A stretch of 64,000 nucleotides of DNA from Octopus bimaculoides. Lineage: Eukaryota. The notes under the pieces are model-generated. The model searched no databases. It saw only the letters and a list, made by a program, of their open reading frames with translations, and was not told the origin of the DNA. Every line of letters starts with the position of its first letter. The first letter of the stretch is position 1. This document shows positions 4,526 through 62,660 of the stretch, piece by piece. Where the stretch lies: contig NC_068981.1 in the NCBI RefSeq assembly GCF_001194135.2, positions 199,746,515 to 199,810,514 of the forward strand. The letters are read 5' to 3'. Both the position numbers and the translations under genes were made by a program.

Positions 4526-4882
4526 AAGGAACTTATTGATTACACGTGTTTTGCTCCATTTATTTTCATTCTTCATATATANNNNNNNNNNNNNNNNNNN
4601 NNNNNNNNNNNNNNNNNNNNNNNNNNNNNNNNNNNNNNNNNNNNNNNNNNNNNNNNNNNNNNNNNNNNNNNNNNNNNNNNNNNNNNNNNNNNNNNNNNNN
4701 NNNNNNNNNNNNNNNNNNNNNNNNNNNNNNNNNNNNNNNNNNNNNNNNNNNNNNNNNNNNNNNNNNNNNNNNNNNNNNNNNNNNNNNNNNNNNNNNNNNN
4801 NNNNNNNNNNNNNNNNNNNNNNNNNNNNNNNNNNNNNNNNNNNNNNNNNNNNNNNNNNNNNNNNNNNNNNNNNNNNNNNNNN

Positions 4883-4920
<38 letters not shown>

Positions 4921-5289
4921 GTATACATATATCATCAGTAGTTCATATATCCCAAAAAGAAGTATACTCTAAAGCAGTAATATATTTTTTTAAGAAGTTA
5001 GATGTTGTGGCCGGCCATAGAGTGACCATTGATTTTGCACCTATAAAGTCCTTAACAGTACAGGTAATCCATCAGGCTCAATTGATCAAAGGCGCATAAC
5101 CTCTCTACAACTGGAGGAAGAAATATGTCAGTTTTGTAAACAAAAAATATTTGACTGTGCATGGATGCTGCGGGTGGGATGGGGTTATTTCTCTTGCACC
5201 AGATCTGGTTATATTCGAAGAAGCTGCAGCAGGGCCTATTCAATGAATGGGGAATTCCAAGCCTGTAGAAGAAAATGTTTCAGATTTTT

Positions 5290-6845: not shown

Positions 6846-7697
6846 CAGAGTGTGGTGAATAAACTGTCATCTAAATTACACAAAAATGAAAATAACATTG
6901 ACATCTCATTTTAACAGATATATTTAGCAAAATTGTGTAAAAATACCTTGAAATACGAAAGAGTAAATTTATTCAATAAAATTGCCATTGGCTTCAACCA
7001 TGGTTTCCAGACTTCTTTCGAATCTCGTGCAACTCTTCTGGACAGTCTCCTTGTTTAAGCTGGTGAATGCTGCCATAATCCTTGCCTTCAGTTCATCTTT
7101 GGTGTTACAAGGAGTTTTGTTGGTCTCTCGCTCAACTACACCCCACACAAAATAATCAAGAAGATTACAGTCAGGGAAGTTAGGTGGCCAGATGTTAGGG
7201 GTGATGGTGTCACAGAAATTGTCTGACAGCCAAGACTGGATTCTCCTGCTTGTGTGGCATGGTGCAGAGTCCTGTTGCCAGACACAGGGTCTTCCAGCAG
7301 CCACCCTCTTGACCCAGGACAGCACTACCTCATACAGGCCTGTGTTGAGTCTGAGGCCATGTGGGAAAATAAATGGACACATAACGTAACCATCACTAGT
7401 GATTGCCCTAAACACCATGATGTTGACTGAATGTTTGATTTCTATCACTCTCGGTACATATGTCCTCAGATGGCATTGTCGTCAGATTGAGACCCAAACA
7501 CTCTGAAATGTTTGTATTGGAGCTTATGGTGCAAATGCCAAATAGTCATTTCCAAATTTCTGGCATAGTGAATAGTGTCATGGTGGTGTTTTTCTCACAG
7601 ATGGTGCCCAACTGACCCTACTATAGTTAACAAAATTAAAAACAAACAATGCACATGCACAAAATTAAAAATGGCAACAATTTACCCATCAGCCTTG
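6846..7697 (-). mobile_element. Internally deleted Tc1/mariner-superfamily transposon, DD37D (maT-type) transposase C-terminus
   Basis: ORF 6969-7448: WQQDSAPCHTS...WPPNFPDCNLLDYFVWG with 37 residues between the second and third Asp; begins ta|cagagtgtggtgaataa at about 6846; right TIR degenerate. Confidence 0.8.
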
Positions 7698-14669: not shown

Positions 14670-16514
14670 TTATGTTTCACAATTGAAAAGTTTCACTCCA
14701 GTGTGTATTTGTTTGTGTGCTTTTAAGAGATTGTTAGTGATAAAAGATTTCCCACACAGATCACAATAATAAGGTCTTTCTCCAGTGTGGATTCTTTTAT
14801 GGACTAAAAGACTGCAATTGACAGAGAAAGATTTGCCACAAATGTCACAGTGAAATGGTTTTTCTCCAGTGTGGCTACGTATATGGATAACAAGACTTGA
14901 ATTATTAATGAAATATTTACCACATATCCCACAATGAAACAATTTCTCTCCACTGTGTATCCTTTTGTGACTGGTTAAATAGCTATTATCGACAAAAGAT
15001 TTACCACATATATCACAATGATATGGTTGTTCTCCAGTGTGTATCCGTGTATGTCTTTTTAATTTACTGTTAGAGACAAAAGACTTGTCACATATTCCAC
15101 AGTGATAAGGTTTTTCTCCTGTGTGACTTCGTATGTGAATAACAAGACTTGAATTTTGAATGAAAGATTTGCCACATATATCACAATAAAATGATTTTTC
15201 ACCAGTGTGGATTCTCTTGTGTTTCCTTAAATCACTGTTATAAACGAAAAATTTCCCACATATATCACAGTGGAAAGGTTTTATTCCAGTGTGTATTTCT
15301 TTGTGTCTGGCTAAATTACTGTCAGAGACTAAATACTTGCCACATATATCACAGTGAAATGGTTTTTCTCCAGTGTGACTTCGGATATGGATAATTAATT
15401 TTGCATTATTCATGAAGGATTTTCCACAGATTTCACAGTGGTATGGTTTCTCTCCACTGTGTAATCTTTTGTGTGTTGTTAAATAGCTGTTATCAACAAA
15501 ATACTTCCCACATATATCACACTGATACGGTTTCTCTCCAGTATGACTACGAATGTGTATAACAAGTTTTGAATTACTCATCAATGATTTCCCGCATATC
15601 TGACAGTGGTAGGTTTTCTCTCCAGTGTGGATTCTTCTGTGTTTTGCCAAACTACTATTATCAATAAAAGATTTCTCACATAACCCACAGTGATAGGGTC
15701 TTTCTCCAGTGTGGATTCTTTTGTGTTTTGTTAAATCACTTTTGCAAATAAAAGATTTTCCACATGTTTCACACTGAAACGGTTTCTCTCCAGTGTGGAT
15801 TCTCTTATGACTTGTTAAATAACTATTATCAAAAAAAGATTTGCCACATATATCACAGTGATAAGGTTTTTCTCCAGTGTGACTGCGTATATGGATGACA
15901 AGATTTGATTTATTAATAAAAGATTTCCCACAGATTTCACAACAGTATGGCCTTTCTCCAGTGTGGATTCTATTATGCCTTGACAAACTACTATTGTCGA
16001 CAAAAGATTTCCCACATATATCACAGTGATAAGGTTTCTCGCCAGTATGAATTCTTTTGTGTCTTGTTATTTTACTGAGTGAAACAAAACATTTCCCACA
16101 TACATCACAATGGTAGGATTTCTCTTCAGTGTGGATTCTCTTGTGTCTTCTTAACTTGCTGTTCGACACGTAAGACTTCCCACATACTTCACAGTGAAAT
16201 GGTTTTTCTCCAGCGTGGATTATTTTGTGACGTTTTAACTTATTGCAATTTACAAAATACTTCCCACAGATTTCACAGTTAAAGAGTTTTCCTTTGTCAT
16301 GTATTTCTTTGTGTGTAAAGACTTCCTCTTCTGAAGAAAATGTCTCCTTACAAATCTCACAGCAATATTCAGTTAAGTTTTTGTCTGGCGATGTTTGTTT
16401 AGTAAATGTTTCACTAGATAAAGATTTCTCACCACTGCATGTTTCTGTTACTGAATCGATATTGTTAAAAACAGGTGCGTTATTAAAAGTGTCCAAGGGA
16501 TTAACGTCTTCCAT
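14670..16514 (-). CDS. Poly-C2H2 zinc-finger protein, 614 aa, 20 fingers, MEDVNPL-leader subfamily (paralogue A)
   Basis: Uninterrupted ORF; about 50-aa leader, then 20 C-x2-C-x12-H-x3-H units with TGEKP-type linkers; an in-frame TAA 24 nt upstream of the ATG supports this start; no KRAB/BTB/SCAN domain recognisable. Confidence 0.95.
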
Positions 16515-19560: not shown

Positions 19561-20039
19561 ACTGGATTCCATGTTACCAGTAACACTTATGAATGCCTCA
19601 TAAGTCAGGAAAAAGATGTATTCGTCTATCTGTTAACAGAGTGGGTATATTATCTGAAATGTACAGTATTGTATATCCATCATGGCTAATCTTACCAATT
19701 GGCTTTGTGCTAGGAGTGTTAGGTAACAATCCAATTAAATAGCCCTACACTCATCAAAGGAATGAATTATATGGAATGAATTATAGCAACTGGTCTCTAT
19801 TGTTGGAGGTGAAAAGACATCCAGTTTGCAGCTGCTGTGAGAAGATGATGAAACGAAACAAGCAGGGGATTTAGTTAAGAGTTATGTCCCTTGGTACACC
19901 ACTGAGTCGGTTATGCTGTAAGTTGGTAATGAGCTATTATAAAACAATTATAAATAAGGACAAAAGAAAAAAAAAAAATTATATACTAGGAGAAGGTCAC
20001 TCTGATATAAAACCAGATATGCAGGGAATGGCATTGGAC

Positions 20040-20245
20040 ATAGTTGTATATGAGGCAGAGATAACAGGCATAGAACCAAGTGGGCAACCAAAGGTGCGAA
20101 AGTGTGTTGGAGCAACTGAAGGCCTCTTCAGAACCCACTTTGACAACCACAAGTCTTCCTTCAGCATCCCGGAGAGACACAATGTCACAACCCAGGCCAA
20201 GCACATTTGGTCTTTGAAACAAAACACCACTGAATACAACATAAA
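20040..20245 (+). mobile_element. Penelope-like GIY-YIG endonuclease fragment
   Basis: IVVYEAEITG...KCVGATEGLFRTHFDNHKSSFS...TTQAKHIWSLKQNTTEYNIK matches the V(I)Y..YIG.T...R..NH.SSF..HIW.LK pattern of PLE endonucleases. Confidence 0.7.
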
Positions 20246-20306
20246 GCCATATTATTGTGATATGTGTGGAAAATTGTTTCTCAGTACAAGTTATTTAACA
20301 AGACAC
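20246..20306 (+). pseudogene. Isolated single C2H2 finger fragment
   Basis: KPYYCDMCGKLFLSTSYLTRH, with codon style like the cluster ZNF genes. Confidence 0.7.
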
Positions 20307-20311
20307 TGTAG

Positions 20312-22300
20312 GCACATTTGTGGGTTAGATTTTGTCTTTGTGTACTTTTAATCACCCGTGGTACTCCAGACCAGCACCTCCAACACTTAACCCGGCTGTT
20401 CATGTGCCTATGTTCCTATGACGTGAAAATCAATCCAGCTAAGTGTGTCTTTGGTTCTACCAGACTGGAATTCTTGGGACACCTAATCAATGCTGATGGT
20501 ATTTATCTACTTCCCTATAAAGTGAAAGTCATCAAACGCTTGTTTCCTCCTGTTTCCTTAAAACAGCTCAGAAATGTTATTGGTGTAATTAATTATTATC
20601 ATCATCGTTTCATTCCTAAATGTGAAGAGAAGTTGCTTCCTTTGACCCAGCACTTGAAAGATCAATGAAAGAAAGACGCACAGATAACGCTGTCTCCTAC
20701 AGCCATCCAAGCTTTTGAATCTGTCAAAGCTGACCTTGCTCAAGCATCCTTCCTCACTCATCCTATTCCGGATGCAAAATTATCACTTACTGTCGATGCA
20801 TCATCATCTGCTAAAAGTGCAGTTTTAGAGCAATCTGTAAACAGCCAAAGCCAGCTATTAGTCTTTTTCTTGTGCCAGCTGAAAAATGCTGAAATGAGAT
20901 AGAGTGTATTTGGTAAAGAACTTTTAGCAATTTACCTGGCATTGAAGCATTTCTCTTATTTTTTGAAGGTAGAGACTTCACGATTTTCTCTGACCACAAA
21001 CTGCTAATGTTTGCTCTCTTTGCAAAAGTGGACTGGTATTTGCCCAGAGAAACAAGGCAATTGGATTATATATCACAGTTCACTGGTGACATTCACCACA
21101 TCGCTGGCATTAACAACATCCTCGCCGACATCTTATGTCACCTGCCTAAAGGTGCATTTTGTCTCCTACTTCGATTGATTTGGTTGAACCAAACTCTCTC
21201 CTTGGATTCTCTGGACATTTCCTCACCACAGTTTTCCTGCTGCAAATTTGAACACCTGCCCCTGCCTTTTTCTGAAGGAATCATTCTCTGTGATGTTTCT
21301 ACCTGGTCACCATGACCCCTCATTCCTGAATGCCACCATCATGCTGTTTTTGAAGCACTGTATTCATTATCACACCCTGACATTGCAGCCACAGTAAAGC
21401 TTGTCTCGGACCACTTTTTCTGGCTGAATATGCGACGGTCTATTACTGCCTGGTCACGTACCTGTCTACCATGTCAGCATTCCAAGGTGCATCATTACAT
21501 GAGAGCACATCTTGGACAGTTCCAGCCAACCGGACACCAGGTTCCATCACATACACATTGACCTGGTTGGTCCTTGGCCAGTCAGTTGCAGATTTACTTA
21601 TATATTGACCTGCATCGACCATTTCTCCAGATGGTCTGAAGCCATCCCTCTCATGGACATTTCTGGGAAACTGTCACCAGAGCACTCGTCCCTGGGTGGA
21701 TATCTCACTTCAGAGTACCCTGATTGTGAACGCCAATTTGAAGCTTACCTGTTCCGTAAGCTTTTGAGATTGCTCAGAGTTCAGCACACCCACACCGCCA
21801 GTTACAATCCCCCCCTGAATGGAATGGTGGGAAGACTCTACTGACAGCTCAAAGCCACTATTCACACAGCTCCTGGCCCTCGTTGTTGGTCTGAGTTTCT
21901 CTCCATTGTTCTGCTAGGGTGCTGCTCAGCTGTCAAGGAGGATTTTGGTCATCCTCCGCTGAGCTCCTGTGTGGCACCACCTTAGCACTTTCTGGACAAA
22001 TGTTGGCGGCCGTCGACTTACCGAATGTAGACCCCACATCTTACGTCATGTGACTCAGGTCATTCTTTGCTGACCGGCCACTGATGCTCCCTCCTGACCA
22101 GTCTATTTCCTCTGCAGTACCTCCAGATATTTCTACCTGGACTCATGTGTTTGTAAGAGATGATGCCATCAAGGGACCACTTGCACCTTCCTACACTGGA
22201 CCCTATCGTGTTCTTAAAAGCACACCCACCAAAACTGTTCACTGTGGACACTCACGGTAAAAAAGAGACTGTCTCTATCGACAGAGTAAAAAAAAGCCTT
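20312..22300 (+). mobile_element. Ty3/Gypsy LTR retrotransposon pol relic (RT C-half, RNase H, integrase), 5'-deleted
   Basis: GLDFVFVY[DD deleted]LITRG..HLQHL..KINPAKCVFG..LEFLGH; VDASS..YS.FGKELLAIY..F.L..SDHK; HPDI..T..LV..HFFW, CLPCQ..K, FHHIHIDLVGP, LTCIDHFSRWSEAIP, YNPPLNGMV, GPLAPSYTGPYRV. Confidence 0.9.
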
Positions 22301-22499: not shown

Positions 22500-23614
22500 C
22501 CATTAGAGGCACTGCATTCACATTTTTTCTCTTTCTGTATCATTGTACATACATGCTTTGTCCTACTTGATTGGACACCTTTCTTTGCTGAACGTTTTTC
22601 CTTGTATTGTATTTTTTTTTTTCAATTGTTCCTACAACTATTTTTGCCATGGTTCATTCTTTTGTGCCCTCCTAGTACACTCCGACTACACTACTATTTA
22701 TCAACCGCTTCTGGCCTAATTAGAAGCCTCTGTAGGTGCATTACCCCACTCAACAGCAAGTCAAACCAGCTGACTAGATACAGAGGGCGTTATGTAACAT
22801 TAAGGTTCAAATACATAACCTCATCTCTCCCCCTTTTCTGCACTAACACGCAAGCTATGAGGATGCAACTTGACTGGCTCTATCTTATGCCACAGGCCAG
22901 CTTGCAGATAGGAGCATAGCACAGAAGACCATGGCCTTTACACACCAATCATTCTATTTACCATTCCATTGTATATATATGAGGGAACCCGTGGAAGAGG
23001 TAGGCCCAGGAAGACCTGGGCTGAGGTGGTGAGGCAAGACCTTCGTACATTGGGCCTCACCGAGGCGATTACTACTGACCGAGACCTTTGGAAATGTGCT
23101 GTGCGTGAGAAGACCCGGCAAGCCAAGTAAGATCGTTGCCAGTGCCCCGGGACTGGTTCTTGTGCGGGTGGCACATGAGATGCACCATTTTGAGCGTGGC
23201 CGTTGCCAGTACCGCCTGACTGGCTCCTGTAGGATTTTCGAGCGAGATCGTTGCCAGTGCCCCTGGACTGGCTTGTGCGGGNNNNNNNNNNNNNNNNNNN
23301 NNNNNNNNNNNNNNNNNNNNNNNNNNNNNNNNNNNNNNNNNNNNNNNNNNNNNNNNNNNNNNNNNNNNNNNNNNNNNNNNNNNNNNNNNNNNNNNNNNNN
23401 NNNNNNNNNNNNNNNNNNNNNNNNNNNNNNNNNNNNNNNNNNNNNNNNNNNNNNNNNNNNNNNNNNNNNNNNNNNNNNNNNNNNNNNNNNNNNNNNNNNN
23501 NNNNNNNNNNNNNNNNNNNNNNNNNNNNNNNNNNNNNNNNNNNNNNNNNNNNNNNNNNNNNNNNNNNNNNNNNNNNNNNNNNNNNNNNNNNNNNNNNNNN
23601 NNNNNNNNNNNNNN

Positions 23615-23683
<69 letters not shown>

Positions 23684-23802
23684 GTGGCCACAATAAACGT
23701 GCTTAGAGTTACAACCTTGCTTGTATGTTATTCATCTGGGTTTACTACCAGCGAGATTACAGCCTTCTGAGAGTCATATTAGGTGGCCCAACGATGACCT
23801 AC
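22500..23802 (+). repeat. Probable Gypsy 3' LTR, interrupted by an RTE insertion, (TA)n and a gap
   Basis: Lies after the integrase; the distal part carries AATAAA (23692-23697) and ends in ...cctaca next to ZNF coding sequence. No second LTR is present to confirm the boundaries. Confidence 0.35.
22982..23281 (+). mobile_element. RTE LINE ORF2 C-terminus joined to its 3' UTR subrepeats
   Basis: GTRGRGRPRKTWAEVVRQDLRTLGLTEAITTDRDLWKCAVREKTRQAK* followed directly by the gttgccagt.. subrepeats; this links the abundant (GAT)n-tailed repeat to the RTE LINE. Confidence 0.85.
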
Positions 23803-24445
23803 ACCATCTAAAACACAAAAGAATACACACTGGAGAGAAATCATATCACTGTGATATCTATGGGAAATTCTTTGTCAATAAGAGTGATTTGACTAGTCAC
23901 AGAAAAAAAAACAAAAAAAAACACAGTGGTGAAAAAGCCTATAATTGTAGATTGTGTGGTAAATCATTCTCTGATAATTGTTATCTTGATATCCACATGC
24001 GTAGCACCACAGGGGAAAAGCCATACCATTGTGAAACATGTGGAACATCATTCTCTGTAAACTGTAGTTTTGTTATCCACATGTGTAGCCACACTGAAGA
24101 AAAATCCTTCCATTGTGAAATGTGGAAAATTATTCACTGTAAATTCTTGTCTAGTGATTCATGAAAGAATCCACACTGAGAAAAAACCTTATCATTGTGA
24201 AATTTATGGAAAATCATTCTCTGATTATTCCAGTCTTGTAGTTCATCAAAGAGTACATACTGAAGAAAACCTCTATCAATGTAGAATCTGTGGTAAATCA
24301 TTCTCTGATAATTCAAATTTTGTAGTTCATAAAAGAATCCACACTGGAGAGAAACCCTGTCATTGTGAAATATGTTGAAAATTTGTTGTCTATAACACTC
24401 TCCTAAAAAGGCACAAAAAAATACACAATGGAGGGAAGTCTTAAA
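23803..24445 (+). pseudogene. C2H2 zinc-finger pseudogene (about 7 fingers; 5' part lost)
   Basis: Cys to Tyr changes (CDIY, CEIY), His loss (RSTT), an A-run insertion at about 23902-23921, a frameshift at tgtgaaatgtgg (about 24114-24125) and a stop at 24376-24378; fingers SVNCS, VNSCLV and SDYSSLVV match the paralogues. Confidence 0.85.
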
Positions 24446-27094
24446 AAGAGAAATATGGAAAACTAACCTCTTGTAAACCTAACCTTCTAACTCACCAACA
24501 AGTACATATTAAAAATCCTTAATCACGGTGATTCTTTCAATTTTCATCTTGTAGTTTACAAATGTTATTTGAGAGAAAGCCTTTCACTGGATAACAAAGT
24601 CGAAAAATACTTTGACACAAAACTTTGTCAAAATGAGAAATCTTTGACAATTGCGTACTGGGGTTGATCTAATTGACTAGACCCTCCCCCAAAATTTCAG
24701 GCATTGTGCCTAGAATAGAAAAGAATATTAAAAGTAACTTGTTACAAGTGTGGGTCTGTGGATTCTACCAAACTGGATATTTATAACAATGTATACTCTT
24801 GGCACTTCATTAGAATGTGCCATAAAGTGAAAATTTTCTCCATACATGGCCTGAAAAGATCACATCATGTATGTAGCTCAGGTATATATATGAAACAATA
24901 TACCTTCCATAGTGTTGACAGCAGTGACACTCTTCTCCAATTCTCTCATTCACTCAGACTGATTTCTATTTTTCAGGATTGTTTTAAGACTTAGATCAAG
25001 TTTGTTCCACAACTATCTCATCACTACTTCTCTCTTAGCATTTAAAATTTCTTTGCTGAATCTGTTCATATTTTGTAATCAGTTTTCTCAAGAATGATTC
25101 TATTTTTCTTAACCTCTTTCTCTCTCTCTCTGAATATCTGCACTAAGAATCAGTGAGTGGTGGTCACCAGCTGACTTTGCATTAGAAGAGGGGTCAGCAA
25201 ACCCCAAGTGGGGTAAAAATGAAATTCTTGGGGGTAACAAGGACTCCTTAGACAAGTAAAATTATATAAAAAATGTGTTCCTCATTAAAACAGAAATGTT
25301 TCTTCTGGTAACACTGCATCTGTCCAATGAAATGGATGTGTAATTAGATCCAATAAACCTTTAGAATCCAAAGAATCTCTGATTTTCTTCCTTTCAAATC
25401 TAGCAGTTAACATCAGCATAAATATATTTTGAGGGAATTGGTTAAAAAAGTTCCCTGATCCCTGCATTTAAAGATCCAAGGAAATAAATAGGTGGTAGTG
25501 TTTTATTTGAGATGTGTTGTTGAAAATAAGAAGATTTTGGCAAATTTAAGTGAGACTCAAACAAGAAATGATAGAACTGAATAGGTTTGTTTCTAAAGTG
25601 AGTCTTTATAATATTTAAGATGTATGTTTTTGTTGTTTATCAGTCTTTCTAGTGATGTTAGATGATGTAGTCTTGTGCAGTTTGTGAGAGGGGGGGGGGG
25701 GTTAATGGTATGATGGTTTGTGCGCTTTTTGATCAGTTCATTTACATGGAAGATTTGTAATGTATAAATATATCTTGTTAGTGTGAATCAGGAAGTGTGA
25801 CAGGAAAGGGTGGTAATGTCATTGACATAGAATACTTTGGAAAAAAGTGAAGACTGTTGAAGAGACGAGGAAAGAAAGATATTTTGTGATCCTTTAAATG
25901 GGGCTCATATGTCACAAAAGTATCATCTTAATACACCCACATGTATACAGATGATAACATCCTACATTCTCCTGTAATGTTTCCTGCATAAAAGTAACCT
26001 ACATGCCATCTTGATATTTCATACCAGACATACCCCCACTTTAATGTGTAGAAACCTTGAAACACTTCAATTGGAACATGACTTGGTTTTATATAACAGC
26101 ACCATAATACAGTCAGGGCATGTCTCAAAAAACAATCGCACTGACAACACTGCACTTATTTTACTAACAAAAAGCCTACACATATACAATCATGTATGTA
26201 TATAGAGTGGGCTGTCACTACCGATTCCACTTGCACAGCATTATTTAGCTGAATGTTATAGTTGAAGAACTTTACCAAAGTTGTAAGACAGTGACATACA
26301 ACCTGAAACTATATGGTTACCAAGGTAACTTTCTATTCCAGCAGTCATGCCTGTGCCTAGTCAAAGATATCAGAAAGACATAAAAAAATGCTAAGTGTTT
26401 CTATTAAGCATGAAGGAAAACATTTTCCAATCTGGAATAAAATCCCTGTTGTTTTTTATATTTTAGTAACATTTTCAATTTCATCATAAGAACTCTTTTT
26501 TATTTATCTTAGAATTCTTAAGGTAACAATTTTAGTTTTCTGTAGAATTGACAGTCGGTAGACGTATACTTGCTTGCACACATCTACTTAGATGTATATG
26601 TCAAGTGATATTTGCTTCTTCTTGGTGTATTCCAGAAGTTTTGAAACATTTTGGGGAGTGCCATCTATATTTATTAATTTCAAAGAAGTACAAAACTCTA
26701 ATCTCCTTCAAACTAGGATCCCACCCCCTGACTTGAATGCTCTTGTTGTAGTACTCCAGTCTCTTTGTGAAGACCCCATGAAAGTCCTCCAAAATGAAAG
26801 TCCTGTCACAGACTCCTTCATCTTCTCAATGTCTTCAAAATGACTGCCCCCAAGGTTCTTCTCCAGCTTGGAGAACAATCAAAAGTTACTTGGACCAAGG
26901 TCTGGACTGTAGGCATGAGAGTGAGGGACAGTTTTGATGCCCATCTCTGTCAAGGAGTTGTTTACAAGGATGGAATTGTGAACTGGTGCAGCTGCCTCTG
27001 ACCCAAATGAAAGATAGCTCTGGCCTTTTGTGATAATATTTCTTCTTGAACTTTCTCAAAGTGGATGTAGATGATGCTCTTGCTGTCAAAAATA

Positions 27095-33973: not shown

Positions 33974-35215
33974 TTAAGACTTTACTCTTGTGTGTATTCG
34001 TTCGTGTCTTTTTAAGAGACTGTTAGTGATGAAAGATTTCTCACATATTTTACAATGGTAAGGTTTTTTACCAGTGTGGATTCTTCTGTGAACTACAAGA
34101 TTAGAATCATCAGAGAATGATTTACCACATATTTCACAATGGAAAGGTTTTTCTCCAGTGTGGCAACGCATGTGGATAACAAGACTACAATTAACAGAGA
34201 ATGATTTACCACATATTTCACAATGGTATGGTTTTTCCCCAGTATGACTACGTATATGGATTTCAAGATTAGAATTATCAGAGAACGATTTCCCACATAT
34301 TTCACAATGGAAAGGTTTTTCTCCAGTATGTATTCTTTGGTGACTTGTCAAATCACTACTATTCACAAAAGATTTCTTGCATACTTCGCACTGGTAAGGT
34401 TTTTCCCCACTGTGTATCCTTTTGTGACTGGTTATATAGCTATTATCAACAAACGATTTTCCACATATATCACAGTGATATGGTTTCTCTCCAGTGTGTA
34501 TTCTTTTGTGTCTTGTTAAACTACTATTATTGATAAAGGATTTGCCACATATGTCACAGTGGAAGGGTTTTTCTCCGGTGTGACTACGTATGTGTACCAC
34601 AAGACTCGAATTATCAGAGAAGCATTTCTCGCATATTTCACAGTGGAAAGGTTTTTCTCCAGTGTGACAACGTATGTGGCTAACGAGACTTGAATTCTGA
34701 GTGAATGATTTACCACAGATTTCGCAATGATAAGGTTTTTCGCCAGTGTGAATTCTTTTGTGAACTACAAGATAGGAATTATCAGTGAATGATTTACCAC
34801 ATACATCACAATAACAGGGTTTTTCTCCAGTGTGAATGATTCTGTGTTTTTTAAGTTTAGAATTAACAGAGAATGTTTTCCCACATATTTCACAGTTGTA
34901 AGGTTTTTCTCCACTGTGGATTCTTTTGTGCGTTGTTAAGACACTGTAATAATCAAAAGATTTCCAACATATTTCACAACGATACAGTTTTCGCTTTTCG
35001 TGTATTTCTTTGTGTGTGAAAAATTCCTGTTCTGAAGAAAATGTTTTCTCACAAATCTCACAGCAATATTCAGGAACATTTCTGTTTGGCGATGTTTGTT
35101 TAGTAAATGTTTCACAAGATAAAGATTTCTCACCACTCTGTATTTCTGTTACTGAATCGATATTGTTAAAAACAGGTGCGTTATTAAAAGTGTCCAAGGG
35201 ATTAACGTCTTCCAT
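33974..35215 (-). CDS. Poly-C2H2 zinc-finger protein, 413 aa, 13 fingers, MEDVNPL-leader subfamily (paralogue B)
   Basis: Intact ORF; start placed at the MEDVNPL ATG (35215) by homology rather than the upstream TTG; candidate AATAAA on the minus strand at 33805-33810. Confidence 0.95.
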
Positions 35216-35242
35216 ATTAAATAATTTGAGAAGTCTTTCAAA

Positions 35243-35368
35243 CTGAGAAATTCCTGTCAATGTAGACTGCTACGATTCTGTTTACATGATAAAATGACGT
35301 TAATTAAGGCAGATGACGTAATTAAACTAATTGCAAAATAGCGGTGTCATTGATAATTTTTCCCTTAC
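35243..35368 (-). other. Predicted 5'UTR intron of paralogue B (126 nt)
   Basis: Donor GAG|GTAAGG (G at 35368), acceptor TTTCTCAG| 27 nt before the ATG. Confidence 0.55.
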
Positions 35369-42162: not shown

Positions 42163-43490
42163 CTGTAAATCCTCAAGTATAGTCCGCCCTAAGTATAATA
42201 CGCACCCCTTCTCTAATTTGAGTCAAAGAGGTCTATATAACATCCTTGGTTTGTAAACGTATATACGGTAACGTCCTTTATTATTATTGTATATATATAA
42301 CATAATGCAAACATGTAGCTTTTTTGTGCTCTTTGTTTGCAGAAAATAAAGAAATAACAGTAATAACGTCAGTGAAAAATAAATATTAAGTAAATTGCCT
42401 TTCACATAATTTATCACCATCAGTTAGAAAAGCAAAAACATTTATTCAAATCCTTCAAATTCAACGTCACTTTCAGCCTCAAATAACTGTTCCATTTGTT
42501 CCTCCGTAAACATGTCANNNNNNNNNNTCACTTTCAGCCTCAAATAACTGTTCCATTTGTTCCTCCGTAAACATGTCAGCATCATTGTAGTGTAAATCTC
42601 CGTCATCATCAGATTCACTTTCATTTATTCCATCTTTCCACACAACGTCATCCTGAGTACCATCCAGTGCAGACGATATACAACATTTGATAAAACTTTT
42701 CACAACAATCTGGGGGTCAAGTTCATTCCATGCATATCAAAGTCAGGTTGGGAGCGCGAACCCTTCCACCTTTAGTGAATGACTTTTCTCCAGTCGACAT
42801 CCATTCAGTCCATAAATCACGCAATTTGTTTTTAATCGGCTTGTGTCAGCATATGATGTAACTCCAAGTTTAAACGTAGCTGAATAAGATCTCCGAGGCA
42901 TTTTATGGGCCTGTAATGCATAAAATGTTTTATTGGAGATTAATGTTCAGGTTTAAGTCCCGCTTATAAAAAAAACCCTAGTAAAGACCCACAGTAGTTC
43001 AAATATTTAATACTGGTATTTAATTAAGTATCTACTGTTTGCCACGGTAATGATGCAAACTGCCAAACAGCAGGATGAACTATTTAGCGCTAAATTATTA
43101 AGCACAATTCGTGCGTAATTAAGCCAGCAACACCTAGTCGAACAAACACTTCCGCACATGCGTAATACAATAATGGTAATGTTGTTAACTGTTAAATGGG
43201 AATGTAAATTGTTTTTGTTACATGTTATTCCATGTTCTGAATACTTTTATTTCAATAAATGTTGCTTACTGCAAGTTATGGATGATTCTTTTATGACTTC
43301 ATTGCTTTCAGGCTTAGCTTAAGGTATTTTCGCACCCGACATCACAAAATGCGTCTGACTAAACATTGCCGGACAGCAAATATAGACTCAGACATTGCTT
43401 AGAAAATATTTTTCGTTTTTAACCTTGTATATAGTACGCACTAGGGATTTTGACCTTTAAATTTTGGGAAAAAAACTCGAGGATTTACGG
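42163..43490 (-). mobile_element. Internally deleted pogo-family DNA transposon (POGK/BrkDBD-like start)
   Basis: TIRs ta|CTGTAAATCCTCAAGT and ACTCGAGGATTTACGG|ta (differences only at CpG); the minus strand reads MPRRSYSATFKL.V..YA fused to KPIKNKLRDLWTEWM..FTKGGRVRAP..AWNELDPQIVVKSFIKCCISSALDGTQDD. Confidence 0.85.
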
Positions 43491-45064
43491 TATCTTTTTC
43501 AAATACTTTTACATATGGACACATACAAAGGTAGTAACAGTCAATCAGTAGAATATAGATTGACAAAATAAATGGCAGGCTGAAAGAATTACTGGGGGTG
43601 GGGTTAACTCATCACTATTTTTAATTAAAGCCTTCATTCAGAATACATATATCCTAATATATTTCTAGTAGGTAGAAAAGATATCAATTTATCTGACACT
43701 GGGAGTAAAGAACTACAAAATGTATTTTGCATAACAATGCAATATTCTGACACTTGCATTTAATTAATTCTTAATACACAATACAATGTTCTTTGGTAAT
43801 ATTGGTTTCAAGTTTTTGCACAAGACCAGTGATTTTATGGGAGGAATAAGTTGATTACATTGACCCCAATGTTTAACTGGTACTTATTTTATTGATACCA
43901 CAGCCTTAGTGGAATCTGAACTTAGTTCATAAAGAGATGGACAGAATGCCATTAAGCTTTGTGCCTGGTGTGCTGCTAGCTCACAGTTCTTTGTTAATAT
44001 GAAAATTATTTGTTTACAAGCAGAGTTCTGGTGAAAGCAAATCATATAACCATCTGTGACTTCTTTGATATTTTTCTACAACTCCTTTGGATTATATGTT
44101 TACAATATTTAAGATTATGGTTCTGTATAAAAATAAAATAACATAATTTTAAAATAAACTTTCCTCTTCATTTTAGAACGTTTTCAACATTTGTTTGTTT
44201 ATCTTGTTAGAAAAAGAAGACAAGTGTAATTTAACAAACGAAATTTTAAAATTGAAAATGGAAAAGTTATGCATTATTTTGCACATCCATACAGCTTCTT
44301 TCATTTAGTGTGTGTATATACAAATTATGAAAGCCTCTTTTTGTGTGCACATGTATAAATAAACGACAGCTTCTTTTGTTTTCTGTGTGTGTGTGTAGTA
44401 TCAACATATTTACTACAGGAAAACTATGCAGAAATATGGTATAATATTCTCTCATGGATTGCAACAAGTGAAAAATTCTTTCAATAATTTGTAGGATAAA
44501 ATGTCATACCATCAAGTAAGTAATCCACATACAAAGACAAAAGCTTCCTTGATTTATAGACTCACATAAAATGAAAGAAGCTCTCATTTGTCTTGCACTG
44601 TATAGATGCAGGAAAATGTTCCTAATTTTTTCATTTTGAATTTCAAAAATATATTTCACGTATAATGCTTTTATTAAACATACAGTAGTAAGTTCTCTCA
44701 CCAATGGAGATATACTTGTTACATAAAATATATAGCTACGAGGTTGTTATTATACTGTTATATATTCATTGTAATCATCATGTCCTCTTTCCATGCCGGT
44801 ATGGGTTAGACGAGTCATCATAGCCAAAGTCACTGCCCTCTGAAATGGGTCAGAGGACAATGTCTTGCTTGTATGTTCCATTTTTGCAATAGTTTCTATA
44901 ACTAAATGGCCTTCAGAGAACCAATCTGCATGAAAACATTCATGGTTGTACAGGACACTTTTTAGAGAATGACTTCACATTGATATGGTTACTCTTACAC
45001 TTGTAAATGAATGCCTACAAATGTGGTTGTGTGATTTTCATGAGATGATGATTTAGTACAGGTA

Positions 45065-46657
45065 TCAGTCATGCAGCTTTTCTCCTCTATGAATATACTT
45101 GTGTTTAATTAAGTTACAATGTTCAGAAAATGGTTTCTTGCAGATCTCACGGGGATGTGGTTTCTTTCTTGTGTGAACGTATTTGTGTTTAGTTAAATTA
45201 TTGGATACAGAGAATGACTTACCACAACGATGTGGCTTCTCTCCTGTATGAATGCGTTTGTGAGAGGATAAACTGCTTGATTCTGTAAATGTTTTACCAC
45301 AAATATTGCAGCGATATGGTTTCTCTCCCGAATGAACACGTTTATGTTTAACTGCATCACCTTTTTCTCCTCTATGAATCCGTTTATGTCTAGATAAGAC
45401 ACTACTTCCAGAGAATGATTTACCACAAATATCACAATATGACTTCCCTCCTGTATGAATGCATTTATGAGTAGTTAAACGATTTAGCCGAGAAAAGGAT
45501 TCACCACACGTACCACAGTGATATGGTTTTTCTCTTGTATGAATATATTTGTGACTACTTAAGTTGCCCCGTGAAGAGAATGATTTATCACAGATATCAC
45601 AACGATATGGTTTTTCTCCTGTATGAATATATCTGTGATCGGTTAACTCACCACTTACAGAGAATGATTTACCACAAATATCACAATAATATGGTTTTTC
45701 TCCTGTATGAGTTCGTTCATGATTAGTTAAGATACTACGTTGTGAGAATGATTTACCACAGATATCACAATGATATGATTTATCAACTTCATGAACATGT
45801 TTGTGAGTAGACAAACTACTTCCTGTAGAGAATGATTTACCACAGATATCACAGTGATATGGTTTTTCTCCAGTATGAATATATCTGTGAGTTGTTAACA
45901 CACCACTTCCAGAGAATGATTTACCACAAATATCACATTGATATGGTTTTTCTCCTGTATGAGTTCGTTTGTGAATAGTTAAGTTACTACGTTGTGAGAA
46001 TGATTTACCACAGATATCACAATGATATGATTTATCTACATCATGAACATGTTTGTGAGTAGACAAACTACTTCCTGTAGAGAATGATTTACCACAGATA
46101 TTACAGTGATATGGTTTCTCTCCAGTATGAATGCGTTTGTGTGCAAGTACGCTATTTCTACGAGAGAATGACTTACCACAGATATCACAATGGTATGGCT
46201 TCTCTCCTGTATGGGTGCGTTTGTGAGAAGCTAAATTAGTTGCTACAGTAAATGATTTACCACAGATATTGCAGACATATGGCTTTTCTCCTGTATGGGA
46301 TCGTTTGTGAACAGTTAGGTAACTTGCTTGAGAAAATAACTTACCACAGATATCACAATCAAATGTCTTCTCTCCGTGAATTCGTTTGTGAGCAGTTAAG
46401 TTACTTTTTTGTGAGAAAGATTTAGAGCAGACATCACAGTGATAAGGCTTTTCTCCTCTATGAATGCATTTGTGAGCAGTTAAGTTGCTACTTTTAGAGA
46501 TTGATTCACCACAGATATCACAGTAAAATAGTTTTTCTCCTGTGTGAATACGTTTAGTAGTTAGATTACCTTTTATAGCAAATGACTTTTTACAGATATC
46601 AGTATTTGTAGACTGTGCTTTACATCTAATCTTGTTTTTGCTTAAATAATTTTCCAT
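45065..46657 (-). CDS. Poly-C2H2 zinc-finger protein, 530 aa, 15 intact plus 4 degenerate fingers, different subfamily (no MEDVNPL leader)
   Basis: Uninterrupted ORF; includes a 252-bp tandem 3-finger duplication; candidate upstream acceptor attatttcag| at 46960. Confidence 0.9.
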
Positions 46658-48098
46658 AATTTTCCTTTTCTCACCAATGATATACTTTTATTTTTCAAGT
46701 TTTTCTTAGTGCTGTATTTCCACCAGTTCTGATCTTTGATTGTATCATAAGCTGTAACTTCATTGTAAATTTGTCCAAGTGTACTTAGTAAACGTTCCAG
46801 TCAGATAAGTACAGCAACATTGCTAATCTTAGTTCACAGGAAATATCTGACTGCAATTCTTCCAAAGATTTACATCAACACAACTGTATGTGTTTGGTCT
46901 AACATTTTTCTATAGATTTTTAAAAGATGATACTTTTGAAATTCTTCAATTCCAATATTCTGAAATAATAGAAACAATATAAAATATAATGGATATCAAA
47001 ACATTAGAGATTCAACATTGGACATTTTACTAAGTTTCTCATATGAGAAATAGAATAAACCTTGGTTGTTTGATTGATTGAATCACTTGCTAATTAGAAA
47101 GTAAACGAGTATCTCAGACACAAGCACCCTCATCATGACAGTCTGTGATAAGGCTACAATCACACGTACAATTCACCTAACTTTCACACAGTTTCTGTCT
47201 CTCTAATTTCACCCACAAAGTTTGGATCAATCCAAGGCTTACAGTAAAAGACACTTGCCCAAGATGCTATACAGTGGGACAGGATCCAAGACTACAAGAT
47301 TGTGATGTGAACTTGTTAACCATTTGGCCATACTGTGCTTAAAATACTGATAAACTGTAGAAACAAGCATTTACTTCAACTACTGAGTTTTACATTATAA
47401 TTTATTATCAAAATTACATCATCCAACTTTGTGTGAAGTGTATCTATTTAGACTATACCTACACCTTCAGACTGCATGACATTAAATGTTAAACTACAAA
47501 TGTGGGATAGCCCTGGACCGACCCTTACACAACCTGTTTCATCCCTCTTACTACACTGTCCAATCTTTTGTCATTAACCCATTGACACTAATCCCTTCTT
47601 TTTAACATGTCCCTTGCATACTCCTATTATTTTCTTCCAACCAAAAGTGACAACTCTGTTAATCTCTCCACTACCACCTTCTCACAACTATAAATCTGTA
47701 CTTCTCATCACACTTTACCCTCTCTTATTGTGCACACACACACACATTCTCTCCCTCTCCTATTCTCTTTCAGTGATAGGGGTCTTTATAGGCTCCTTAG
47801 TCTTGCAAGATAATCTCATTTATGCTTTACCAATTGTTTTCATAATTGTGATGCTTGTATAATCTGACCCGTGACAAATAATAGGCTGTTCATTTGATGT
47901 CTTTTTATTAAAAATAAAAAATATTATTTATTTTGTTTAGAAAAAACTCTCATAGGATCCACTAGTCACGACTAGCTAAAGCGGATGCGCGAGTACGCGC
48001 ACCGAGACCACTCTCAAAACGAAAGATCGCCCCCTGACCTCCTAATATGCTGCAAACTCCTTATTTTTGTTCGGAAAAGGTGGGGAAACCGGACCCCC

Positions 48099-49203
48099 GG
48101 TACTATCCAAGAAGAGTGGTCCCGGTGCGCATCCGCGCTAGCTAGTCGTGACTAGTCGATCCTACGACTACCTAGCGCGAGTGCGCGTCATGCGCAAAAC
48201 ATGTCTGAGGGTTTTTTCTAAACAAAGTAAAAAAATTATACACTACCTGTTTTTGGTAAAGAGTCCATTAAAAAGTCGGGCACTATCATGCTATTAGCTG
48301 TCAGAAGTGAAAGTGCTCACTGCTAGTGAAGTATCTGTCTGTCTGCCTGCATGCCTGTCGATTCTTTGGCTACTGACAGCTAATACCATGACTGGCCGGA
48401 GCGAGCTATCTGTCTGTCTGTCTCTCTATCTATCTATCTATTTATCTATTACTCGAAAGTTCGCGCGTCCGCGCTAGCTAGTCGTGAGCTGAAAACACAA
48501 ATTTAATATAAAAACATATTTCCTGAAATTGCAAATTATTTAAAATATAAAAATATAATTTTCAACAGAGAGAATTTATCAAAATAGAAAACAAATGAAG
48601 TTTGAAGTTTAAAAATAATAGGATCGACCACTCACGACTAGCTAGCGCGGACGCGCGAACTTTCGAGTAATAGATAGAGAGAGATAGAGAGACAGACAGA
48701 CATATAGCTCGCTCCGGCCAGTCATGGTATTAGCTGTCAGTAGCCAAAGAATCAACAGGCAGATACTTCACTAGCAGTGAGCACTTTCACTTCTGACAGC
48801 TAATAGCATGATAGTGCCAAAAGTCGGTCTTTTAAAATCGACTGTTGTTCAATGGTATCAGTACAAGTAATTATCTTTTGCGTAACCCCTACCAAATTGG
48901 TGGACTTGGGCACATCGTAGAAATAGATGAATCTATGATGTGCAAATACAATGGAGGATGGGATAGAGGGGATAAAAATAGGTTTTTTAGTCTTTGTACC
49001 TGACCGTTCTTCTGAAACTCTTCTATCACTTATTAAAAAATTTATCAAACCAGGGACGACTATGTTCTGATCGTTGGGGTGCGTACAATGGGACTCTTTA
49101 CCAAAAACAGGTAGTGTATAATTTATTTACTTTGTTTAGAAAAAACCGTCATACATGTTTTATGCGAGTGCGTGCACCGGGACCACTCTTCTTGAAAAGT
49201 ACC
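48099..49203 (+). mobile_element. Internally deleted Merlin (IS1016/IS1595-like) DNA transposon with long TIRs
   Basis: Termini GGTACTATCCAAGAAGAGTGGTCCCGGTGC / GCACCGGGACCACTCTTCTTGAAAAGTACC; the interior 48841-49090 reads TVVQWYQY..YQIGGLGHIVEIDESMM.KYN / GG.DRG...FLVFVPDRSSETLLSLIKKFIKPGTT / SDRWGAYN (Merlin DDE motifs). No TSD found. Confidence 0.85.
48279..48818. mobile_element. Foldback MITE, Merlin-type (540 bp), nested in the Merlin relic
   Basis: GGCAC...GTGCC ends, arms of about 190-210 bp, AT-rich spacer, perfect 8-bp TSD AAAAGTCG (48271-48278 / 48819-48826). Confidence 0.9.
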
Positions 49204-54094: not shown

Positions 54095-54121
54095 TTTTTG
54101 ATGCTTCCTAAATTATTTAAT

Positions 54122-55210
54122 ATGGAAGACGTTAATCCCTTGGACACTTTTAATAACGCACCTGTTTTCAACAATATCGATTCAGTAACAGAAATACACA
54201 GTGGTGAGAAATCTTTATCTTGTGAAACATTTACTAAACAAATATCACCAGACAGAAATATTCCTGAATATTGTTGTGAGGTTTGTAAGAAAACATTTTC
54301 TTCAGAACAGGAATTCTTTACACACAAAGAAATACACGACAGAGGAAAACCCTTCCACTGTGAAATATGTGGGAAAGCTTTTGATTATAATAGTTATTTA
54401 ACGAAGCACAAAAGAATCCACACTGGCGAAAAACCGTTTCACTGTGAAATATGCAGGAAATCTTTTGTTAGTAATTCGAATCTTCTTATACACAAACGTA
54501 GTCACAGTGGAGAAAAACCTTATCATTGTGATATATGTGGGAAATCATTTATGATAAACAGTTATTTAACAACACACAAAAGAATCCACACTGGAGAGAA
54601 ACCTTGCCGTTGCGAAATCTGTGGGAAATCTTTCTCTGATTATTCTAGTCTTATAGTTCACAAACGCAGTCACACTGGAGAAAAACCCTATCACTGTGAT
54701 GTATGTGGCAAATCGTTTGTCTCCAGCAGTAATTTAACTAAACATAAAATAATACACACTGGAGAAAAACCGTTTCACTGTGAAATATGTGGGAAATCTT
54801 TCACTCAGAATTCAAGTCTTGTAATTCACGTCCGTAGTCACACTGGAGAACAACCATATCACTGTGAAATTTGTGGGAAATCTTTTGGAAATAATCGTGA
54901 TTTAAAAAGTCATGAACGAATACATACTGGTGAAAAGCCGTACAATTGTGAAATATGCGGGAAATCATTTTCCGTTAATTCTTGTCTTGTGGTTCACAAA
55001 AGAATCCACACTGGAGAAAAACCTTATCGTTGTGATATATGTGGAAAATCGTTCTCTGATTATTCCAGTCTTGTAGTTCACAAAAGAATCCATACTGGTG
55101 AAAAGCCATATCAATGTGGAGTATGTGGTAAATCATTTATCACGAATGGTCACTTAAAAACACACACACAAATACACAGTGGTGAAAAGTCTTTTAACTG
55201 TGAAATGTAA
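54122..55210 (+). CDS. Poly-C2H2 zinc-finger protein, 362 aa, 11 fingers, MEDVNPL-leader subfamily (paralogue C)
   Basis: Intact ORF; an alternative in-frame ATG at 54101 would add 7 aa; candidate AATAAA at 55365-55370. Confidence 0.95.
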   Translation: MEDVNPLDTFNNAPVFNNIDSVTEIHSGEKSLSCETFTKQISPDRNIPEYCCEVCKKTFSSEQEFFTHKEIHDRGKPFHCEICGKAFDYNSYLTKHKRIHTGEKPFHCEICRKSFVSNSNLLIHKRSHSGEKPYHCDICGKSFMINSYLTTHKRIHTGEKPCRCEICGKSFSDYSSLIVHKRSHTGEKPYHCDVCGKSFVSSSNLTKHKIIHTGEKPFHCEICGKSFTQNSSLVIHVRSHTGEQPYHCEICGKSFGNNRDLKSHERIHTGEKPYNCEICGKSFSVNSCLVVHKRIHTGEKPYRCDICGKSFSDYSSLVVHKRIHTGEKPYQCGVCGKSFITNGHLKTHTQIHSGEKSFNCEM

Positions 55211-61529: not shown

Positions 61530-62660
61530 TCTAGCTCTTCCAGAACTCAGTTTTATTGAGGATGGGTTTTTTGAGAACCTCATATTGCCAGAGATCTTGG
61601 TCTGTTGTTATCTCATCTGTCATGTTCAAGGTCCATTTCATCCCATGTCTTCCTCTTCTGCAGGTTCCAGTTACATTAATCGAACGGAACATCTTTATGC
61701 AGCTCTCCGTAATCATACACATCACACAACCATACCATCTCAAGCTTTATTCTTGAACATAACATCTGATACTTCTTATAGCCTGTTTTATACTTAGCAC
61801 TTTTCTCCTAATTCTTACATTGTTCAGCTAATGGAGCTTGCTCACTTCATTTCTTTCCAGTCTTGTCAAATCCTCTGCATTCAAGGCCCATGCCTCACTA
61901 CCATGCAGCATTGCACTTCTAACACAGACGTTATACAATCTACCCTTTGTTGTCAGCAGTGGTAGTAGCTCTCTGAACTTCCTGCGGCCAGTTCTTATTC
62001 TAGCAACTGTACTTTCAGAGCAACTACCACCCATACTAATTGCATTTCCTAGGTAACAAAAGCTATCAACTACTACTAATGAGCCATTTGCACATTTAAG
62101 AGACTTAAGGCTCCTCAATTCCTCTTCCCTGCCTGGAATTTCTTTTCTAATTCCATTGCCATTGCTATTGATGACATGAAACTGACTTGGAGGTGCTATT
62201 AATGAGAGACTTCTCAACAAGAATGGTCTTTTCCTTTAGAGTGTAGGGCAAGTTGTATGATGCTTATGTAAAATCTGTAATATTGCATGGTAGTGAAACA
62301 TGGGCCATGAATGCAGAGAACTTGAGCTACTAGAAAGAAATGAAGTGAGCATGTTCTGTTGGTTATGCATTATAAGTGTGCATGAATGATATAGTACAAA
62401 TGTGCTGACAAAAACTGGGCATGAAAGAAATCAAATGTGGTGGGTAAAAAAGATTGTACTGGTACGGACATGTGCATGAATGAGGGCATCTGTATAAAGA
62501 AGTGTTGATCACTTAATGTAGAGGGAACTTGTGAAAGAGGGAGACCCAGAAGGACATGAGACAAGGTGGTGAAAGCTGATCTCAGGACCATGAAACTTGT
62601 TGAGGTGATTACAAGGGACTGGCATGACTTGTAATATATGATTCCCAAGAAAAGCTGCAC
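61530..62660. mobile_element. Two RTE ORF2 C-terminal fragments in opposite orientation (61530-62200 minus; 62220-62660 plus)
   Basis: VVDSFCYLGNAISMGGSCSESTVARIRTG.RKFRELLPLL..AMLHGSEAWAL; plus-strand LRV*GKLYDAYVKSVILHGSETWAM. Confidence 0.8.

Follow-up and report, generated by a model that had tools for sequence, protein, structure and literature searches.

We describe a single recent in-frame tandem duplication of three zinc fingers in a poly-C2H2 ORF of Octopus bimaculoides, in which the two copies have diverged preferentially at the positions of the recognition helix that are predicted to contact DNA bases. The heterogeneity of rate between these contact sites and the framework of the fingers is firmly shown. 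An in-frame 252-bp duplication with a conserved framework and diverged contact residues very probably constitutes standard array diversification. There is already ample documentation of this pattern in poly-ZNF genes, and the octopus locus is a new but ordinary example of it, being mainly confirmatory.

The duplicated block, its host ORF and the cluster

The host of the duplication was located by an ORF call and a finger regular expression within the window, that is, the whole stretch of 64,000 nucleotides that was analysed:

45065-46657, minus strand: poly-C2H2 zinc-finger ORF

Its 530-aa product contains 15 intact C-X2-C-X12-H-X3-H fingers, as matched by the regular expression, in addition to degenerate ones. 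Repeated C2H2 motifs together with conserved Phe/Leu core residues identify it as Krueppel-type, and HTGEKPY is the majority linker between its fingers, in keeping with the TGEKP(Y/F) consensus. Pfam returned PF00096 (268.7 bits) and PF13465 (356.9 bits), both far over their cut-offs, and only C2H2 families were matched in the 530 aa; no Pfam match was obtained for KRAB (PF01352), SCAN, BTB, ZAD or SET, nor for any other effector or repressor domain. KRAB is generally considered to be restricted to vertebrates. An identical ORF appears in the Octopus bimaculoides assembly GCA_001194135.2, where it lies on chromosome CM046601.1 at about 199.79 of 199.87 Mb, near the chromosome end. The first-pass annotation, which took the host for a non-KRAB invertebrate ZNF, was correct on this point. 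The ORF is probably the exon that carries the finger array of a poly-C2H2 zinc-finger gene, putatively specific to the octopus lineage. Helix positions -1, 2, 3 and 6 are predicted to mediate sequence-specific DNA binding, from homology to solved DNA complexes, the closest by sequence being those of ZNF568, PRDM9 (5v3g, 5egb) and the designed protein Aart; the Zif268 complex is also homologous.

The window as a whole is a tandem ZNF gene cluster with 62 intact fingers and at least four ORFs. DNA identity between the 530-aa ORF and the neighbouring ZNF ORFs is only about 67-72%, and it therefore belongs to a different subfamily. Three intact poly-ZNF ORFs make up the other subfamily, which is recognized by a shared N-terminus:

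14670-16514, minus strand: intact poly-ZNF ORF
33974-35260, minus strand: intact poly-ZNF ORF
54098-55210, plus strand: intact poly-ZNF ORF

The N-terminus of these three ORFs is 84-88% identical (...SGEKSLS..ETFTKQ), and Pfam recognizes only C2H2 fingers in them. By analogy of position, it may be a lineage-specific module equivalent to KRAB or FiNZ. When this N-terminal domain was searched with tblastn as a candidate for the 530-aa ORF, it matched the three neighbour genes only and nothing upstream of the ORF. Disrupted ZNF arrays at 23721-24507 and 19884-20351, both on the plus strand, carry internal stops ('CEIC*KF') and mutated Cys ('CDIYGKFF') and are pseudogenised members of the cluster.

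Other features of the window were also recorded. A 159-aa ORF at 6969-7448 (minus strand) has a weak DDE_3 match (E = 0.0036, 17.6 bits, under the cut-off); it resembles the C-terminal part of a Tc1/mariner-type transposase and is probably a TE remnant. By eye, a 130-aa ORF at 61828-62220 (minus strand; …LYNVCVRSAMLHGSEAWALNAEDLTRLERNE…) resembles the LINE region downstream of the reverse-transcriptase domain, with no Pfam match. About 1.3 kb upstream of the 530-aa ORF, at 47950-49200, lies a dense nest of inverted repeats with arms of 30-84 nt that are 89-98% complementary, which looks like foldback or MITE-like nested insertions. Finally, (TA)n/(TATA)n microsatellites at 4536-4941 and 22938-23770 flank two of the N runs, and these gaps fall at microsatellites.

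Within the 530-aa ORF, two adjacent three-finger blocks stand out:

45866-46117, minus strand: block A, the upstream copy (aa 181-264, fingers 6-8), with helices TGSSLST, QRSNLTI and GSGVLTT and a net charge of +5
45614-45865, minus strand: block B, the downstream copy (aa 265-348, fingers 9-11), with helices TGSSLST, QRSILTN and VSGELTD and a net charge of 0

The blocks align without gaps and differ at 15 of 252 nt (94.0% DNA identity), with differences in 9 of 84 amino acids and synonymous differences at four codons. An identity profile at a lag of 252 nt reaches 0.88 or more only at ORF nt ~526-800 and falls to 0.6-0.8 on either side. DNA identity between the finger pairs 6/9, 7/10 and 8/11 is 0.96, 0.95 and 0.90, while every other pair in the gene lies between 0.60 and 0.82. 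Since high identity is confined to one unit and the other pairs are only 60-82% identical, this is one discrete recent duplication, beyond the general periodicity of the fingers. TRF independently reports a 252-bp period in the ORF. A tandem duplication of this length, joining aa 181-264 to aa 265-348 with nine amino-acid differences, had been proposed from a first inspection of the sequence, and the gapless alignment, the lag profile and TRF all bear it out. The nearest N runs are at 42518 and 55292.

Zinc ligands, hydrophobic core and TGEKPY linkers are all intact in both blocks. An acidic, atypical linker follows fingers 6 and 9, where HDVDKSY and HEVDKSY (46040-46054 and 45788-45802, minus strand) stand instead of HTGEKPY; it was retained in both copies and may interrupt contiguous wrapping of the DNA, splitting the array into sub-arrays that bind separately. 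We also looked for gene-conversion tracts between the blocks and found no sign of them, the four synonymous differences being spread evenly (block codons 27, 49, 75 and 82).

Divergence at the base-contacting positions

The amino-acid differences from block A to block B are N186D, D206E, N225I, I228N, K230E, Q240Y, G250V, V253E and T256D. With helix numbering in which the first zinc-binding His is +7, five of them occupy contact positions: N225I (+3), I228N (+6), G250V (-1), V253E (+3) and T256D (+6). The earlier count of five among nine differences at -1, +3 or +6, which are only 9 of the 84 sites, is thus exact and corresponds to the helix pairs QRSNLTI vs QRSILTN and GSGVLTT vs VSGELTD. Codon mapping places the changed residues as follows:

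45890-45985, minus strand: span of the five differing contact codons in block A (N225 45983-45985; I228 45974-45976; G250 45908-45910; V253 45899-45901; T256 45890-45892)
45638-45733, minus strand: span of the matching contact codons in block B (I309 45731-45733; N312 45722-45724; V334 45656-45658; E337 45647-45649; D340 45638-45640)

Fingers 6 and 9 keep the same helix residues (TGSSLST). Four changes lie outside the contact positions: N186D falls between the two Cys, D206E within the atypical linker, K230E directly after the first His and Q240Y directly before the first Cys. Each of the five contact changes is radical, and five of the six underlying nucleotide changes are transversions. The window being genomic DNA, RNA editing was ruled out as a source of the differences.

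Fingers 7 and 10 show a reciprocal swap between +3 and +6, from N..I to I..N (45974-45985 vs 45722-45733, minus strand), produced by one A/T transversion at the second position of each codon, the two being independent (AAC to ATC and ATT to AAT). This swap may be a coincidence or a re-positioned contact of Asn with adenine.

Under a uniform null, the concentration of changes at -1, 3 and 6 has a hypergeometric P of 4.3e-4, or 2.4e-3 when +2 is added. A uniform null is nevertheless wrong for zinc fingers, because ligands, core and linker are not free to change. Empirical nulls were then drawn from the 62 intact fingers of the window. In these fingers, positions -1, +3 and +6 hold 21% of the pairwise amino-acid variability, and among 45 other finger pairs at least 80% identical in DNA they carry 22.6% of 270 differences. 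Under such family-typical shares, five or more contact changes among nine have P = 0.024-0.033, a range to be read with the null pairs being non-independent. The enrichment at contact positions (56% vs about 22%) is real but modest.

Codon-level tests were carried out on one sequence pair with 15 substitutions. For the whole block, the Nei-Gojobori method gave dN 0.057 and dS 0.082 (ratio 0.69), and dN/dS across the 75 non-contact codons was 0.30 (NG86). The nine contact codons accumulated six nonsynonymous changes over 21.0 nonsynonymous sites (dN 0.36) and no synonymous change. The ratio of contact dN to block dS is 4.4, with P = 0.03 when nonsynonymous changes at contact codons were set against the synonymous changes of the block in a one-sided Fisher test; nonsynonymous changes at contact vs non-contact codons differ with P = 2e-4. 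We also fitted a maximum-likelihood codon model of the GY94 type (F3x4), with branch length and kappa shared between site classes, and obtained an omega of 0.20 for the background and 2.57 for the contact class. Two omegas fit better than one (2dlnL = 14.35, P = 1.5e-4). When the contact omega was compared with 1, the likelihood-ratio test gave 2dlnL = 1.84 (two-sided P = 0.17, one-sided 0.087), and widening the contact class with +2 lowered omega to 1.60 (P = 0.49 against omega = 1 by the same kind of test). A conditional binomial test, in which six of ten putatively neutral events fall on contact nonsynonymous opportunity, gave P = 0.018-0.26 and an implied omega of 1.8-4.6, both depending on the codon-frequency model and kappa; with the mutational opportunity of GY94-F3x4, P was 0.13-0.26.

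Specificity residues thus changed at or above the neutral rate, and point estimates in every model suggest an omega above 1 at the contact sites. The framework, with omega about 0.2-0.3, has been under purifying selection since the duplication (omega_bg < 1 tested alone: P = 0.08). Adaptive retargeting of the array, the interpretation initially offered for this block, is therefore only partly sustained: contact sites did evolve faster than the rest of the block (P = 1.5e-4), but an omega above 1 is not established either by likelihood (P = 0.17) or by counts (P = 0.018-0.26).

Array growth, relaxed constraint and selection

According to the standard path of array diversification, the three-finger duplication would have arisen when finger repeats with their 84-bp periodicity underwent unequal crossing-over or replication slippage. 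TRF periods of 252, 168 and 336 bp are also found in the neighbouring ZNF arrays, and block duplication consequently looks like the normal growth mode of the cluster. After the duplication (dS ~0.08), the Cys/His ligands, hydrophobic core and linkers of the framework were held at an omega of about 0.2-0.3, while in the second and third fingers of the block the base-reading positions (-1, +3 and +6) changed at the synonymous rate or faster (omega ~2-4). The potential recognition site of the array would thereby lengthen by about 9 bp. In two of the new fingers the preferred triplet would now differ from that of the parent finger, the 6/9 pair being presumably unchanged. By the canonical recognition code, the preference would presumably go roughly from nAA to A(T)A between fingers 7 and 10, and roughly from TTn to CCn between fingers 8 and 11.

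The contact changes may have been driven by positive selection or by relaxed constraint, both of which would be ordinary diversification of a poly-ZNF array, and evidence from the rest of the ORF bears on the choice. Signs of decay are found at both ends of the array:

46580-46630, minus strand: degenerate first finger (...TTKRIH), which on sequence inspection has lost the C-X2-C spacing and the first His
45119-45370, minus strand: C-terminal region in which three fingers have collapsed or degenerated in frame (45332-45370, 45203-45238 and 45119-45157)
44958-45025, minus strand: finger-like relics (HICRHSFTS, NVKSFSKK) past the stop codon, each in a frame of its own

The ATG of the ORF lies inside degenerate finger sequence and an in-frame stop is found 11 codons upstream of it. 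Judging from the relics after the stop, the array was once longer. The deletions that removed or truncated fingers within the ORF are all in frame.

The two copies are also asymmetric. The fingers of block B are the least basic of the gene, with no net charge against +5 in block A. A Lys is present at the K230 position in nine of nine other fingers and is replaced by Glu in block B, and V253E and T256D put acidic residues on the recognition helix. Compared with the other nine fingers, K230, N225, G250 and V253 look weakly ancestral and N186 derived in block A, so that most contact changes would have occurred in block B, which would be, tentatively, the more derived copy; the older 252-bp units of the array are too distant (60-82% identity) to serve as outgroups. 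Protein searches with the full-length 530-aa ORF returned nothing over 57% identity. With the 168-aa duplicated region as query the best match was an O. vulgaris fragment (64%) with unrelated helices; matches in the word-index searches apparently reach up to ~1.75x the query length, as inferred from the lengths listed. An exhaustive search of cluster representatives, dominated by giant ZNFs, gave 54% at best, and an exact-sequence cluster look-up showed that the ORF is absent from the protein collection, where no annotated protein matches it. As no orthologue, allele or close paralogue was found in these searches, the changes are neither polarised nor replicated.

Relaxed constraint is a serious explanation, falling just short of probable. 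Here the redundancy of the block would let the surface residues of the helix drift neutrally while the fold residues are constrained or not yet hit, and the downstream copy may lose affinity for DNA. This reading is consistent with a contact omega of 1 not being rejected and with the contact positions being the most variable ones across all fingers of the cluster. It also agrees with the loss of positive charge in block B and the acidic shift brought by K230E, V253E and T256D, with the collapse of neighbouring fingers through in-frame deletions, with the relics past the stop and with the lack of a matching annotated protein in the collection. Against it stand the contact omega estimates, all of them over 1, the enrichment above the family-typical share (nominal P ~0.03), and the intact zinc ligands, core and TGEKPY linkers of both blocks.

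A possible but rather doubtful explanation is that positive selection moved the specificity residues of one copy and retargeted the protein to new DNA, for example an evolving TE, as a KRAB-independent analogue of the arms race between KZNFs and TEs in vertebrates. The size of the contact omega (1.8-4.6), the Fisher test and the radical nature of all five contact changes, with transversions prevailing, speak for it, as does the 56% share of amino-acid changes on contact sites against the 21-23% typical of the cluster (P ~0.03). Nevertheless, the case was picked by eye and nominal P values near 0.03 are therefore not compelling. The likelihood test of a contact omega of 1 is not significant (one-sided P = 0.087), and the GY94-F3x4 binomial gives P = 0.13-0.26. 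Decay at both array ends also argues against positive selection; decay and asymmetry fit relaxed constraint at least as well as adaptive retargeting. As regards TEs, the predicted motifs of octopus ZNF ORFs are enriched genome-wide in TE consensus sequences generally (Wells et al., 2023, PMC10547256), but a repressor domain is not present in the ORF. It seems unlikely that the locus captures positive selection still acting on the base-contacting residues shortly after a block of fingers was duplicated within the gene, here a ZNF of a mollusc without a KRAB-like domain.

That the whole ORF is a dead, neutrally evolving pseudogene, with the contact pattern arising by chance, is very improbable. 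The degenerate terminal fingers, the out-of-frame relics after the stop, the missing N-terminal domain and the absence from protein databases would agree with it. However, 530 codons have remained open in DNA of 33% GC, and every finger deletion inside the ORF preserved the frame. The substitutions are not uniform (hypergeometric P = 4.3e-4, LRT P = 1.5e-4), and a fully neutral pseudogene is therefore rejected. Purifying selection on the framework (omega ~0.2-0.3, with omega_bg < 1 alone at only P = 0.08) implies that, during some or all of the period after the duplication, the array served as functional coding sequence. An assembly artefact, in which two alleles or a collapsed paralogue were stitched in tandem, is hardly credible despite the many N gaps and repeats of the window, since the copies differ by 6%, far over allelic divergence, lie exactly in frame and register within a 12.7-kb gap-free stretch, and belong to an ORF recorded identically for two samples of the contig.

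Under standard array diversification, the locus is an example of octopus ZNF arrays being enlarged by block duplication, with divergence at specificity residues coming afterwards. Were the divergence adaptive, the genome-wide correlations of ZNF and TE expansion outside vertebrates would be joined by an example from a single locus, and the two three-finger blocks differing at five contact residues would be a natural experiment suited to binding assays. Should a young octopus TE family (SINE or LINE) turn out to match the new fingers, this would constitute a single-locus, KRAB-independent ZNF-TE arms race in an invertebrate.

Comparison with other zinc-finger systems

The octopus genome paper is said to have described an expansion of C2H2 genes in cephalopods. 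The 530-aa ORF fits such an expansion, as it belongs to an Octopus bimaculoides ZNF cluster and lies beside three or more intact ZNF genes as well as several relics; these neighbours differ in belonging to another subfamily with a shared N-terminus that the ORF lacks. Cephalopod C2H2 expansions have been described and a TE arms race in cephalopods was called an open question (Holzinger et al., 2025, PMC12513265).

In mammalian KRAB-ZNF paralogues, arrays also grow by in-frame finger units, and duplicates differ preferentially at DNA-contacting helix positions with a conserved framework (Emerson and Thomas, 2009, PMC2604467; Nowick et al., 2011, PMC3126818). Finger duplication within arrays has been called 'a common path for divergence', and positive selection is often seen at the contact residues of the duplicates (Nowick et al., 2011, PMC3126818). 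In contrast, the octopus ORF has no KRAB, SCAN or BTB, its host is a mollusc, and positive selection is not statistically established in the octopus pair.

The minisatellite of PRDM9 shows a likeness of another kind, with finger repeats highly similar in DNA and differences concentrated at -1, +3 and +6. PRDM9 contains a PR/SET domain, and concerted evolution has kept nearly all of its fingers almost identical, whereas the octopus ORF has no PR/SET, only fingers 6-8/9-11 are at least 90% identical, the others remain at 60-82%, and array-wide homogenisation is not seen.

Outside tetrapods, the FiNZ-ZNFs are also lineage-specific clustered poly-ZNF genes whose contact residues are the most variable. 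Base-contacting residues are likewise the most variable positions in octopus ZNFs, and in the same study positive selection was shown with PAML only for the zebrafish FiNZ-ZNFs (Wells et al., 2023, PMC10547256). FiNZ-ZNFs differ from the octopus ORF in having a defining N-terminal domain and PAML support across clades of at least ten paralogues, while the ORF, known here from sequence alone, has no N-terminal domain and offers one pairwise comparison of two finger blocks.
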